This document shows, one piece after another, positions 20,750 through 23,512 of a stretch of 28,489 bases of DNA; the stretch's first letter is position 1, and each line of letters begins with the position of its first letter. The stretch lies in the sequence record NC_028787.1. The stretch is one strand, 5' to 3'. Made by a program: the position numbers and the translations under genes. The notes under the pieces are model-generated. The model had not been told where the DNA came from. It made no database searches and was given only the letters and a program-made list of their open reading frames with translations.

Positions 20750-20995
20750 ATGAACCTACAAAACTATGATAAATTAGTAAATTATCTCCTAACACACATT
20801 AGATCTATCCATTCAGGTACACTTTATAAAATCTTGAAAAAAGATAAAAGAATTAAAACTTATTTAGGAGTTAAAAAACTAAGAAAGAAATGGGTTGATA
20901 ATTTAGCAGTCAAGGGTTATGTGAAAGGAAAAGGTTCAATTACTGACCCTGAACAAGTTAAAGAAATACTTGATAAATTTTTTAGCCAAAAGTAA
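20750..20995 (+). CDS. Basic protein, possible winged-helix DNA binder (81 aa)
   Basis: Three helices ending WVDNLAVKGYV, a wHTH-like L..KG.V pattern; Lys-rich. Confidence 0.45.
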   Translation: MNLQNYDKLVNYLLTHIRSIHSGTLYKILKKDKRIKTYLGVKKLRKKWVDNLAVKGYVKGKGSITDPEQVKEILDKFFSQK

Positions 20996-20998
20996 GGT

Positions 20999-21145
20999 AT
21001 GGAAAACTACACTGAACTAATCCCTCAACCATACTATGATTCTATTATTAATTACATTACTCTTAGAATCCTAACTAGAATAGTTGATTATGAGCCTAAA
21101 AACAAAGTTGAAATAAGCCCAAGAACAGTATTAAGGATTTACTAA
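20999..21145 (+). CDS. Small hypothetical protein (48 aa), not in ORF track
   Basis: AAGGT RBS; MENYTELIPQPYYDSIINIITLRILTRIV...; fills the gap exactly. Confidence 0.6.
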   Translation: MENYTELIPQPYYDSIINYITLRILTRIVDYEPKNKVEISPRTVLRIY

Positions 21146-21149
21146 GATA

Positions 21150-21332
21150 ATGAAGCTCACTTACATCTTAGTGACTGCAGTTTTTATTTCATTAATAGCT
21201 TTTTTTATACTTAGAAATCACCCTGTAAGTCTTATTTTCTTTAACCTATTTACGAATGTCCTAACAGTCCTTACTATACTTTTAAAAGACCTTAACATTC
21301 CAGTACCCGCAAAAATTTCTTCTTTTGCTTAA
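21150..21332 (+). CDS. 2-TM membrane protein (60 aa)
   Basis: Two hydrophobic segments. Confidence 0.75.
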   Translation: MKLTYILVTAVFISLIAFFILRNHPVSLIFFNLFTNVLTVLTILLKDLNIPVPAKISSFA

Positions 21333-21370
21333 AAAACCAGAAGTAAACACTCCTTTTTAAATAGCATAAG

Positions 21371-21586
21371 ATGATACGTATGGAATACAAAACAACCTTT
21401 ATAGCTATCCTCCTGATTGGTGCATTAATAGTAGTATTAAACACAACCGGCTATCTAAATAATGCCTCTAATCTATCAACAATAATTCTATTTGTAGCAA
21501 TCGCATTAGCATTTTCTCTATTTATTGATTTTGAGAAACCAGTAACAACTACTGTACCAGTCTATAAACAGGAGGTTATTGGATAA
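21371..21586 (+). CDS. 2-TM membrane protein (71 aa)
   Basis: Own TATA (CTTTTTAAATA); two hydrophobic segments. Confidence 0.75.
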   Translation: MIRMEYKTTFIAILLIGALIVVLNTTGYLNNASNLSTIILFVAIALAFSLFIDFEKPVTTTVPVYKQEVIG

Positions 21587-21611
21587 TTTATAAGCTCATA
21601 AGGTGATAGAC

Positions 21612-22088
21612 ATGGCACATAAAGAAGGCGGTCACAAGACCCCCGTTCTTGTATTTCCAAGTAATTGGACAGGCAAATGGATCTATAGAGCTATTATAAA
21701 TACCCCAAAGTGGCAGTTGAATGCGGTACTAAATTCCTACAAGTATAACGAATGGATTGGGTTTGAATCAACTTACCTCAACGGGTTAAGATTACCTGAA
21801 AGAACAAGCCCTGAAATGAACTATCAGAGATCTGTTGTAGTAGGTATAGAGGTATCTAGAGCCTCACAAGAATACGAGAGGACTTTCCACAAAGTACCCA
21901 TGGAGGATAAGATCAAATTATTGAAAGAGGAGTTAGAGACACCTATTGTTGGTGACATGATAAGATCATTAGTACAAGCAAACTTACCCATGCCAACTCC
22001 TCAACCAATGCCTGTTGTTGAATTAAAGACACCTGAAGTTGAAATGAAAGAGAGCGGGGAAAGAATACCCGCTATTAAATTAGCATAA
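21612..22088 (+). CDS. Candidate major structural protein 1 (158 aa)
   Basis: TTTATAAG TATA, GGTGA RBS, visibly C-ending codon bias, His/Lys N-terminus; distant similarity to the next gene. Confidence 0.45.
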   Translation: MAHKEGGHKTPVLVFPSNWTGKWIYRAIINTPKWQLNAVLNSYKYNEWIGFESTYLNGLRLPERTSPEMNYQRSVVVGIEVSRASQEYERTFHKVPMEDKIKLLKEELETPIVGDMIRSLVQANLPMPTPQPMPVVELKTPEVEMKESGERIPAIKLA

Positions 22089-22099
22089 GGTGATAGGTT

Positions 22100-22609
22100 A
22101 TGGCTAGACACCACAAGAAAAGTAAAGCAGATTTAGTTCAAGTCACACCTGACGCTACCCTACACTATGTGGAGGGTATCTTAACCGGTGCACAAGACTA
22201 CATCTCTGGAATTCTAGAGGGTGCCTCTCTATACAACTCTTGGGTAGAAGTTGAACAAGGCTTAGAAGGTAAGAGGATTGGTGAGTATAAACCAGATGCC
22301 CTAAGAAACTTCTTAGAGAACCTGAAGAAAGTTAATCCAACCTTATACAACCAAGCTATGGCTAACCCAACTGAATTTGTAAAAGCTAACCTACCTGAGA
22401 TTGTGAAGAATACCAACTATCAGAGATTAGCTAACACTGATGCTATAATGATAGAAGCAGGTAGACAATACAGAGACATGTACCCATCTCTATTGAAGTC
22501 TAAGAACGTTCAATCAGGTATGGCATTCTTACAAAATTATGCCCCAATGGGGGCTGTCTCTATGGCTAAGTTAAATGACATCCTAAAGAGTGCAGTTAAA
22601 GTAGAGTAA
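22100..22609 (+). CDS. Candidate major structural / nucleocapsid protein 2 (169 aa)
   Basis: Basic MARHHKKSK N-terminus, helical body, high-expression codon pattern, GGTGA RBS. Confidence 0.5.
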   Translation: MARHHKKSKADLVQVTPDATLHYVEGILTGAQDYISGILEGASLYNSWVEVEQGLEGKRIGEYKPDALRNFLENLKKVNPTLYNQAMANPTEFVKANLPEIVKNTNYQRLANTDAIMIEAGRQYRDMYPSLLKSKNVQSGMAFLQNYAPMGAVSMAKLNDILKSAVKVE

Positions 22610-22620
22610 GGTGATCTGAA

Positions 22621-22866
22621 ATGGCTTTTAATGGTAATTTCTTCACATTTAGCCCCGTAAGTCTAGTAATTATTGCCATACTATCCGCATTAGGCTATAA
22701 ATTTACTAGAGAGATAAGTACCAATAGAGCAGTACCAGTAATAATAGGCTTAATCATGATCTTCTTAGGAAAGGGCGGAATACTTAGTACAGTTGGTGCC
22801 GGCATCACCGCTTTAGGCATAAGTAGATTCATAGCTCAAGAAACAGAGAAAATAATTAGTTCTTAA
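22621..22866 (+). CDS. Gly-rich 3-TM membrane protein (81 aa)
   Basis: GGTGA RBS; GxxxG-like helices. Confidence 0.82.
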   Translation: MAFNGNFFTFSPVSLVIIAILSALGYKFTREISTNRAVPVIIGLIMIFLGKGGILSTVGAGITALGISRFIAQETEKIISS

Positions 22867-22876
22867 GGTGAGTCAC

Positions 22877-23152
22877 ATGGCAGAATTAGTTCAATTTGTA
22901 CAACCTACTGTAAACACAGAAAGAGTTGAAATAGCAGGAGACTCCATTATTTCAGCAATTGTAGGTGGAATAGTATTAGGTATAATGAAGACTTATTTCA
23001 CTGATAAAATACCCGCGTATTTTAGCTTAATAGGTGGATTCCTATTACTAATGCTATACGGCAATTATCCCATTGCCAAGGGCGTTGGTTTTGCTCTTGT
23101 TGTAGACGGAATCTACTCTATCCTAAATCAATACGTAACCATAAGTTCATAA
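22877..23152 (+). CDS. Gly-rich 3-TM membrane protein (91 aa)
   Basis: GGTGAG RBS; similar topology to the previous gene. Confidence 0.82.
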   Translation: MAELVQFVQPTVNTERVEIAGDSIISAIVGGIVLGIMKTYFTDKIPAYFSLIGGFLLLMLYGNYPIAKGVGFALVVDGIYSILNQYVTISS

Positions 23153-23180
23153 CTTTTTTCTAAGTTATCCTTTTTTCAAC
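23153..23180 (+). terminator. Oligo-T terminator of the structural unit
   Basis: CTTTTTTC...CCTTTTTTC immediately after the stop codon. Confidence 0.5.
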
Positions 23181-23207
23181 TATCAGGTTTTTCTTATTCT
23201 GTAAGGT

Positions 23208-23375
23208 ATGAACTGGAAACTTATAGCCGGGTTAATTTCTGTATTTGTTTTAGGTTTTGTCATAGGTAGACTTAAAGTATCTGTTCACACATGCCCCGCC
23301 ATGAGATCACAAAGAGTAAAAGAAGCTATTAGGAGAATTCAAGAAATGGACGATAGTTCTGACAACTATCTGTGA
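23208..23375 (+). CDS. Small single-pass membrane protein (55 aa), not in ORF track
   Basis: MNWKLIAGLISVFVLGFVIGRLK...; AAGGT RBS. Confidence 0.65.
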   Translation: MNWKLIAGLISVFVLGFVIGRLKVSVHTCPAMRSQRVKEAIRRIQEMDDSSDNYL

Positions 23376-23383
23376 GTGAGACC

Positions 23384-23512
23384 ATGGCGTTGACTGGAGT
23401 TACAGTCCTTAGATCACCAACATTTCTCACAATTATAGTATTAGCAATGATACTTTTTGGAATTGGACTAGTAACTCTGTTGTTAGTTGAAGCTGGAATA
23501 GTTAAATCATAA
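23384..23512 (+). CDS. Small membrane protein (42 aa), not in ORF track
   Basis: GTGAG RBS; FLTIIVLAMILFGIGLVTLLLV. Confidence 0.65.
   Translation: MALTGVTVLRSPTFLTIIVLAMILFGIGLVTLLLVEAGIVKS

Follow-up and report, generated by a model that had tools for sequence, protein, structure and literature searches.

Two adjacent genes of Acidianus bottle-shaped virus 3 as distant paralogues and candidate DNA-packaging proteins

The stretch of DNA analysed here (28,489 bases; the window) is identical to the entire Acidianus bottle-shaped virus 3 genome (ABV3; KP282674 / NC_028787), that of a metagenome-derived member of the Ampullaviridae. Two adjacent genes in it, here called F1 and F2, raise the question whether they are sister genes and whether their products are the proteins that coat the viral DNA. 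Both are annotated as 'hypothetical protein' in ABV3, ABV2 and ABV, the ABV and ABV2 orthologues showing 56-65% identity. Both have full-length matches among the PHROGs profiles (F1 residues 1-157, E 4e-94; F2 residues 1-169, E 3.8e-96), to phrog_19713 and phrog_21625 respectively, which are filed as separate families of 'unknown function'. The original prediction, made from the nucleotide sequence alone, regarded the two products as candidate major structural proteins that look like distant paralogues, and the nucleoprotein filament of the virion as a heterodimer of the two. The comparisons below indicate that F1 and F2 are very probably paralogues, at least over the first 65 or so residues and over a second shared helix opening with NY.R. 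They also make the two genes the best, though unproven, candidates for the paired DNA-packaging proteins of ampullaviruses. The relationship between the genes, the repeat that they share and their reciprocal charges are all absent from the annotations of the two PHROGs families and of the ABV and ABV2 genes.

Relationship of F1 and F2

The sequence features by which the two proteins had been linked are present. The two strings quoted as similar lie at residues 38-63 of F1 and 37-62 of F2, the motif NYQR-10x-A-3x-Y-3x-(F/Y) at residues 70-92 and 106-128, and both proteins begin with an arm rich in His, Lys and Arg. The insertion of about 40 amino acids (aa) claimed for the second protein corresponds to 37 extra residues in F2 between the two motifs. 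Taken as a single pair, the ABV3 proteins are not significantly alike (BLASTP E 0.15; Smith-Waterman comparison against 2000 shuffles, z about 1, p 0.16-0.19). Their pairwise likeness was dropped as stand-alone evidence because these scores are not above chance.

Comparison of family profiles gave a signal that increased with the diversity of the alignments. With the first family alignments, hhalign matched the NY.R helix only (probability 8%, E 0.0041), and a relaxed alignment was collinear from residue 1 through both motifs, with a gap where the insertion had been placed. The alignments were then widened using contigs of the most divergent members, whose neighbouring genes were translated. 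Addition of the divergent members raised the probability to 42% (E 2.7e-4), and the widest alignments (A5 and A6) gave 79% and E 1.6e-5 for F1 residues 1-64 against F2 residues 1-63. In 120 column shuffles the mean score was 13.3 (sd 2.5, maximum 20.4), against an observed score of 38.8 (z 10.4). The reversed alignment gave E 0.35. The capsid proteins of Acidianus filamentous virus 1 (AFV1), which served as an unrelated control of comparable size and helical make-up, gave E 0.05-0.24. The match remained when the basic residues 1-12 were deleted (E 2.5e-4). The C-terminal halves alone aligned at the NY.R helix (E 7.8e-4), a second signal that stands in the same order in both proteins.

The two families are also bridged by single sequences. 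P0080, an F1 homologue from a divergent lineage, matches P0082, an F2 homologue from another lineage, with a BLASTP E of 5e-9 and 32% identity over residues 1-73, interrupted by two one-residue gaps. The all-against-all comparison held many more weak cross-family matches, all of them collinear. In a search of BFVD with the F2 model, F1 was found at rank 3, the second match after F2 itself (E 0.53, probability 0.33, TM [template modelling] score 0.29-0.30). This agrees with paralogy and is insufficient alone, because it is not significant.

The alternative is that the F1 and F2 families are not homologous and that the likeness reflects convergence of two helical repeat proteins, or chance. Profile scores can be inflated by helical repeats, the hhalign probability stays below 95%, the ABV3 pair by itself is not significant, and the bridging pair was chosen afterwards as the best of about 1500 comparisons. 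Its E value nevertheless stands after correction for that number of pairs. Convergence or chance would further have to account for a signal that grows with every addition of diversity, for two separate segments that match with their order kept, and for the failure of the shuffled, reversed and unrelated-helical controls. Between residues 1 and 52, moreover, the repeat register and the invariant aromatic residues match position by position in an ungapped alignment, and the genes are adjacent, as is usual for tandem duplicates. Independent origin is considered very unlikely. The significant collinear similarity, with its controls, is what is looked for in tandem paralogues, and the case for distant paralogy is stronger than could be seen when it was first proposed from the ABV3 sequence. 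One ancestral gene would have given rise to F1 and F2 by an ancient tandem duplication.

A shared element not mentioned in the original prediction is an 11-residue repeat that occupies residues 23-55 in both proteins and in the same register. Lag-11 self-similarity was found in the F2 family with z 5.6, lag 11 being the only positive lag, and in the F1 family with z 5.0 (0.71), where lag 20 was also marginally positive (0.09). In the first alignments both families keep invariant aromatic residues at 23, 34 and 48. Each F2 repeat has glycines four residues apart, the F1 counterparts being Ala and Asn/Ser/Thr, and Lys closes each F1 repeat.

The repeat is part of a common plan: a basic arm (residues 1-12), a short extended stretch, the repeat helix (some 35 residues), a turn of conserved L-(N/E)-G sequence and then the helix opening with NY.R. 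After the turn F2 has about 37 extra residues, forming three short helices, before the NY.R helix, whereas F1 has instead a proline-rich acidic tail. In the family alignments N106, Y107, R109, A120 and Y124 of F2 are invariant, and R73, A84 and Y88 of F1 are invariant or nearly so. The AlphaFold2 monomers computed with the family alignments are all-helical and of low confidence (mean predicted local distance difference test score, pLDDT, 58 for F1 and 65 for F2). Helices are predicted in F1 at residues 21-29, 34-40, 42-56, 67-90, 97-108 and 111-121, followed by the disordered proline-rich tail, and in F2 at 20-54, as a single long helix, and at 67-78, 80-88, 90-104, 107-127 and 137-147. The insertion is the best-modelled part of F2 and its length varies within the family.

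The F1 tail differs in both length and sequence across the family. P0080 (L009:4001-4408; contig JAVYPI010000040 of GCA_038733365.1) is a homologue of 135 aa without the proline-rich tail, which is therefore dispensable. In the tails of the ABV branch (ABV ORF167 and its relatives P0030 and P0039; alignment columns about 140-175) a short G-K-E-I-P motif is duplicated. The tail therefore alters by small internal duplications, as expected of an exposed, unconstrained segment.

Both families are closed and confined to ampullaviruses. The F1 family comprises 55-58 clusters and the F2 family 21 clusters at 90% identity, all on ampullavirus-like contigs. When 1.84 billion representatives were searched exhaustively with the F2 profile, nine genuine clusters of the family were recovered at 50% identity; two further hits, P0091 and P0092, were rejected as repeat-protein artefacts, one consisting of coiled-coil repeats and the other of simple repeats. 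A scan of IMG/VR gave ABV and ABV2 only. Each of the 11 lineages examined has both genes, F1 preceding F2, and none has just one of the two.

Pairing and role in the virion

The charges of the two proteins are reciprocal, and this pattern is conserved across family members. The N-terminal arm (residues 1-12) is basic in both, with a mean net charge of +2.8 in F1 and +4.9 in F2. The repeat helix has a mean net charge of +2.4 in F1 (range 0 to +4, 29 members) and of -2.1 in F2 (range -5 to 0, 24 members), and the C-terminal parts are acidic in F1 and basic in F2.

A prediction of the complex, with F1 residues 1-125, full-length F2, their own family alignments and three controls, gave a median ipSAE (interaction prediction score from aligned errors) of 0.35 (runs 0.48, 0.14 and 0.35), the best of the controls reaching 0.00. 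The runs agreed in at least 21% of contacts, partner pLDDT being 55 or higher, and no interface was given. When the method was calibrated, 58 of 80 solved complexes and 2 of 110 mismatched pairs came up to the mark. In the range up to 0.60 lay only 7 of those 80 solved complexes and both of the passing mismatches, so that the F1-F2 pass is a weak one. The strict co-inheritance of the genes and the reciprocal charges agree with pairing without proving it. The proposed heterodimer is weakly supported by the structure prediction and by the charges, and its probability is judged to be about even.

Several observations point to a structural role. Among 54 open reading frames (ORFs) of ABV3 compared with ABV, F1 ranks first in conservation (1.30 bits per residue) and F2 fourth (1.20), the DNA polymerase reaching 0.87. 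A nucleotide query of positions 21000-23500 matched ABV and ABV2 (66% identity) nowhere beyond the small upstream gene, F1 and the beginning of F2, which agrees with F1 as the most conserved gene. The GC contents of F1 and F2 (0.396 and 0.402) and those of their third codon positions (GC3; 0.367 and 0.385) are the highest of 49 ORFs, and a perfect GGTGAT stands 5-7 nt upstream of the starts of F1, F2 and the following 81-aa gene. The features of high expression that had been claimed are thus borne out in part, as regards base composition and ribosome-binding motifs, the latter being downgraded as a sign of high expression (see below). That the products are major structural proteins is plausible, as these are core genes found only in ampullaviruses, with high conservation, the highest GC3 and small membrane-protein genes as neighbours.

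A non-structural task, in which the paralogues would act unpackaged as assembly chaperones or scaffolds, as a pair of regulators or as egress factors, would suit the lack of relatives and the merely weak complex prediction. The Pfam search gave sub-threshold noise only (PMM, HMUDK_hel and XPC-binding), feature and shape searches of the ESM Atlas gave no usable match, and the PDB gave none either. Against such a task stand the rank of the two genes as the most conserved and most GC3-rich of the genome, their strict co-inheritance within a structural-looking block, and product masses of 18-19 kDa, which lie inside the 15-80 kDa reportedly spanned by the major ABV virion proteins; it is considered quite improbable. 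F1 and F2 are core genes and, on this evidence, somewhat more probably structural than not.

What they might build is suggested by the virion. The ICTV (international virus-taxonomy committee) profile of the ampullaviruses describes a nucleoprotein filament of 7 nm without assigning any gene a structural role, and no paper assigning ampullavirus structural proteins to genes was found, the original ABV papers being outside the literature covered. Six major virion proteins of 15-80 kDa were reportedly found in ABV by Haring et al. in 2005. F1 and F2 would be the two small, abundant proteins of the virion, joined as a 1:1 pair by their repeat helices, F1 contributing a basic repeat helix and an acidic C-terminal part and F2 the reverse. 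The two basic arms would hold double-stranded DNA together with the basic F1 stripe and the C-terminal part of F2, likewise basic, and the DNA-bound pairs would build the filament, which would be coiled into the cone-shaped core.

A parallel is provided by Sulfolobus ellipsoid virus 1 (SEV1; Ovaliviridae), an enveloped virus of Sulfolobales, in which the small helical protein VP4 coats the DNA to give a filament that is coiled into a compact core (PMC12273771). As capsid proteins that bind DNA in dimeric form, the SEV1 authors name helical ones rich in Arg/Lys/Asn, and they report relatives of VP4 from ovalivirus-like contigs only (PMC12273771). The F1 repeat helix has a narrow stripe of K, R/N and N that may be compared with those Arg/Lys/Asn-rich helices. 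The coil-stacked nucleocapsids of SEV1 and of Sulfolobus polyhedral virus 1 (SPV1) are a functional parallel to the ampullavirus core, likened by description, and SEV1 has one capsid protein whereas F1 and F2 are a pair of paralogues.

The coating of DNA in the filament is a candidate role of F1 and F2, held tentatively at less than even weight. The fuller account, in which ancient tandem duplicates pair one to one and coat the DNA in a filament, is the best overall explanation, at a little under an even chance.

A number of points weigh against this account. Both proteins are only mildly basic overall (isoelectric point, pI, 7.9 and 8.7), and the repeat helix of F2 is acidic. The monomer models are poor and match no solved capsid protein of a filamentous archaeal virus. 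The F1-F2 complex score falls within a range where, for a guess not already likely, wrong calls outnumber right ones. In Sulfolobales, Shine-Dalgarno motifs mainly mark internal genes of operons; the GGTGAT motifs were downgraded as a sign of high expression since they may mark no more than such positions. In public sequencing runs the locus was found in DNA metagenomes only and in no RNA run. Finally, the hendecad repeats and the membrane-gene neighbours fit a matrix role under the envelope about as well.

In that last reading F1 and F2 would be paralogous virion proteins forming a matrix or tegument, with the repeat helices lying on the inner face of the envelope or binding the small membrane proteins, and so linking envelope to core. 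It is the main alternative, and arises because the 11-residue repeat recalls helices that bind lipid surfaces. An 11-residue periodicity is known in the lipid-surface helices of apolipoproteins, alpha-synuclein and perilipins. As in 11/3-repeat helices generally, both right-handed coiled coils and lipid-surface helices, F1 and F2 have a strict lag of 11 over three repeats and one residue class fixed in position. They have just three repeats, and no sequence relation to 11/3-repeat families was found in the Pfam and PDB profile searches. The lag-11 signal of the apolipoprotein, perilipin and synuclein type is thus present in both families and shows periodicity only. The matrix role is also favoured by the position of the two genes among five or more genes of small membrane proteins, by a membrane-protein gene that lies between F1 and F2 in two lineages, by the near-neutral overall pI, and by the invariant Trp residues at positions 19, 23, 34 and 48 of the F1 helix, Trp being common at membrane interfaces. 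It leaves the strongly basic N-terminal arms to be accounted for, which are kept in both families and are usual for capsid proteins that bind nucleic acid. No better candidate gene for coating the DNA was identified in the genome, though no systematic search was made. On balance the matrix role is considered unlikely.

If the DNA-coating heterodimer is accepted, its design has still to be compared with the known ones. In lipothrixviruses and tristromaviruses the paired capsid proteins wrap the DNA as a heterodimer. As an account of how F1 and F2 might function, the comparison with these pairs made in the original prediction is fair. The capsid fold of Sulfolobus islandicus rod-shaped virus 2 (SIRV2) consists of a long N-terminal helix, which becomes ordered only on DNA, and a C-terminal four-helix bundle. 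F1 and F2 could be extremely diverged versions of this SIRV2-like fold, which would place the ampullaviruses in Adnaviria together with rudiviruses, lipothrixviruses and tristromaviruses. The general plan is similar: neighbouring genes encode two all-helical paralogues of 130-170 aa, each with an N-terminal part that models poorly alone ahead of a helical bundle. The low-confidence F1 and F2 models have a poorly modelled N-terminal helix and a better-modelled helical core. The closest comparison is with ORF132 and ORF140 of AFV1, which also stand side by side in an enveloped Sulfolobales virus and encode all-helical paralogues of similar length (132 and 140 aa; F1 and F2, 158 and 169 aa). The AFV1 pair is plainly paralogous (E 8e-21, 39% identity), whereas the paralogy of F1 and F2 needs profiles and bridging sequences to be seen. 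F1 and F2 further differ from AFV1-type pairs in their 11-residue repeat helix, and the ampullavirus virion contains a coiled cone and not a straight filament.

No direct link was found. Searches with the F1 and F2 family profiles against all PDB chain sequences, with E up to 10, gave noise only and no archaeal virus capsid protein, and hhalign comparison of the widest alignments with AFV1 ORF132 and ORF140 gave a probability of 1% or less. Pfam and PHROGs yielded no SIRV2-like capsid protein either. Neither model had a Foldseek match in the PDB at E 0.001 or lower, and among the Foldseek and VIA-align matches of both models there was no capsid chain of a filamentous archaeal virus. Sequence similarity is a weak test for membership of the SIRV2-like group, since known members can themselves be mutually dissimilar, even to the point of no similarity at all; Sulfolobus filamentous virus 1 (SFV1) has two coat proteins without apparent mutual sequence similarity (PMC6105669). 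The models are also too poor for the absent fold match to be strong evidence. That ampullaviruses replicate by a protein-primed polymerase and have hardly any genes in common with Adnaviria also counts against their inclusion in that realm.

Because neither a sequence nor a fold link was found, the suggestion that the design is related to that of the lipothrixvirus and tristromavirus capsid proteins is unsupported, and the searches with profiles, Foldseek and VIA-align gave no link to rudivirus capsid proteins either. A relationship of F1 and F2 to Adnaviria capsid proteins is very unlikely, and a strongly diverged SIRV2-like fold that would bring the ampullaviruses into the realm is slightly less probable still. 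A design convergent with the lipothrixvirus and tristromavirus heterodimers is possible. The most specific proposal is that the filament is a 1:1 heterodimer of ancient paralogues that pair by oppositely charged three-hendecad helices, unrelated in sequence and probably in fold to SIRV2-like capsid proteins and thus an independent invention. In this detailed form it is rather doubtful.

The F1-F2 locus

The features of the locus are listed in Table 1. The gene order, with a small gene, F1, F2 and two small genes, is found in ABV3, ABV and ABV2 and in six divergent lineages, and the upstream position is held in related loci by a gene of 70-78 aa. From the arrangement of the sequence, the five genes encoding the 71-aa protein, F1, F2, the 81-aa protein and the 91-aa protein may be read as one operon.

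Table 1. Features of the F1-F2 locus; positions refer to the window
Feature	Position	Strand	Description or evidence
TATA-like box (TTTTTAAATA)	21354..21363	+	Candidate promoter of the five-gene unit; sequence reading, putative function
Small two-helix membrane-protein gene, 71 aa	21371..21586	+	Likely first of unit; two hydrophobic segments; real start may be ATG 21380
GGTGAT Shine-Dalgarno motif of F1	21602..21607	+	Sequence reading
F1 gene	21612..22088	+	158 aa, 18.2 kDa, pI 7.9, no Cys, no membrane segment; homologue of ABV ORF167; phrog_19713
F1 residues 1-64, domain common to F2	21612..21803	+	Basic arm, hendecad helix, conserved L-N-G-L turn; hhalign 79%, E 1.6e-5; controls; bridging pair
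F1 residues 23-55, three 11-residue repeats	21678..21776	+	Aromatic at 23, 34, 45 plus W48; net positive; lag-11 z 5.0
F1 residues 70-92, NY.R...A...Y helix common to F2	21819..21887	+	hhalign E 0.0041, E 7.8e-4; predicted helix 67-90
F1 residues 123-158, proline-rich, variable tail	21978..22085	+	Predicted disordered, net acidic; pLDDT under 50
GGTGAT Shine-Dalgarno motif of F2	22089..22094	+	F1-F2 intergenic gap 11 nt
F2 gene	22100..22609	+	169 aa, 18.9 kDa, pI 8.7, no Cys, no membrane segment; homologue of ABV ORF174; phrog_21625
F2 residues 1-63, domain common to F1	22100..22288	+	BLASTP bridging pair, hhalign and controls
F2 residues 23-55, three 11-residue repeats	22166..22264	+	F1 register (Y23, Y34, Y45, W48); G...G spacing; net negative; lag-11 z 5.6
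F2 residues 64-105, F2-specific insertion of three short helices	22289..22414	+	Alignment gap; helices 67-78, 80-88, 90-104 at pLDDT 79-91
F2 residues 106-128, NY.R...A...Y helix common to F1	22415..22483	+	hhalign; predicted helix 107-127
Downstream small membrane-protein gene, 81 aa	22621..22866	+	Own GGTGAT at 22610-22615; conserved with ABV ORF85
Second downstream small membrane-protein gene, 91 aa	22877..23152	+	From ATG 22877; listed GTG 22868 sits in AAGGTGA motif
Three T-tracts directly after stop codon	23154..23192	+	Candidate archaeal terminator of the unit; sequence reading, putative function

The start of F1 is taken as ATG 21612, as in homologues starting with MAH or MAR, because the alternative GTG 21603 lies within the Shine-Dalgarno motif. 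The program-made ORF list starts two genes at a GTG within AAGGTGA (22868-22879 and 21603-21614), the likely starts being ATG 22877 and ATG 21612. Other listed ORFs whose upstream sequence ends in TAAG or AAGGT may share such a misplaced GTG start.

In two further lineages a gene for a membrane protein of 75-88 aa lies between F1 and F2. This intervening gene (L009:4410-4637 and L010:3506-3772; also L011:2041-2307) weakly resembles the ABV3 protein encoded at 22877-23152 (BLASTP E 0.004 and 0.013) and may therefore be a local change of gene order in the operon. Some 600 nt upstream of F1, at 20750-20995, is the gene of an 81-aa lysine-rich protein with 42% identity to ABV ORF86 and no Pfam match, which is another candidate DNA-binding protein.

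Two divergent ampullavirus-like contigs are of near-genome length, ERZ1669412 NODE_8 (29,989 bp) and JBBINF010000270 of GCA_037444045.1 (26,579 bp), and their F1 proteins share about 38-50% identity with ABV3 F1. These contigs, and at least nine F2 clusters at 50% identity, suggest an ampullavirus family that reaches beyond the three named genomes. The contig of P0080 is binned with a metagenome-assembled genome of Saccharolobus sp., which is a hint at a host outside Acidianus, or a binning artefact.

Meaning for the Ampullaviridae

The Ampullaviridae have been assigned to no realm, and the literature covered gave no structural protein assigned to a gene. Having no hallmark capsid protein, the family therefore cannot be placed among other viruses. 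That two of the best-conserved ampullavirus genes are, very probably, sister genes whose products share a repeat helix and carry reciprocal charges gives a concrete hypothesis that can be tested cheaply, and the two family profiles pick out ampullavirus-like contigs in metagenomes. If F1 and F2 prove to form a matrix layer, they would be a new kind of linker between envelope and core. If the pair coats the DNA, it would show whether paralogous helical heterodimers arose more than once for the protection of DNA in viruses of hyperthermophiles, and an independently invented heterodimer would provide the first hallmark capsid genes for the Ampullaviridae.

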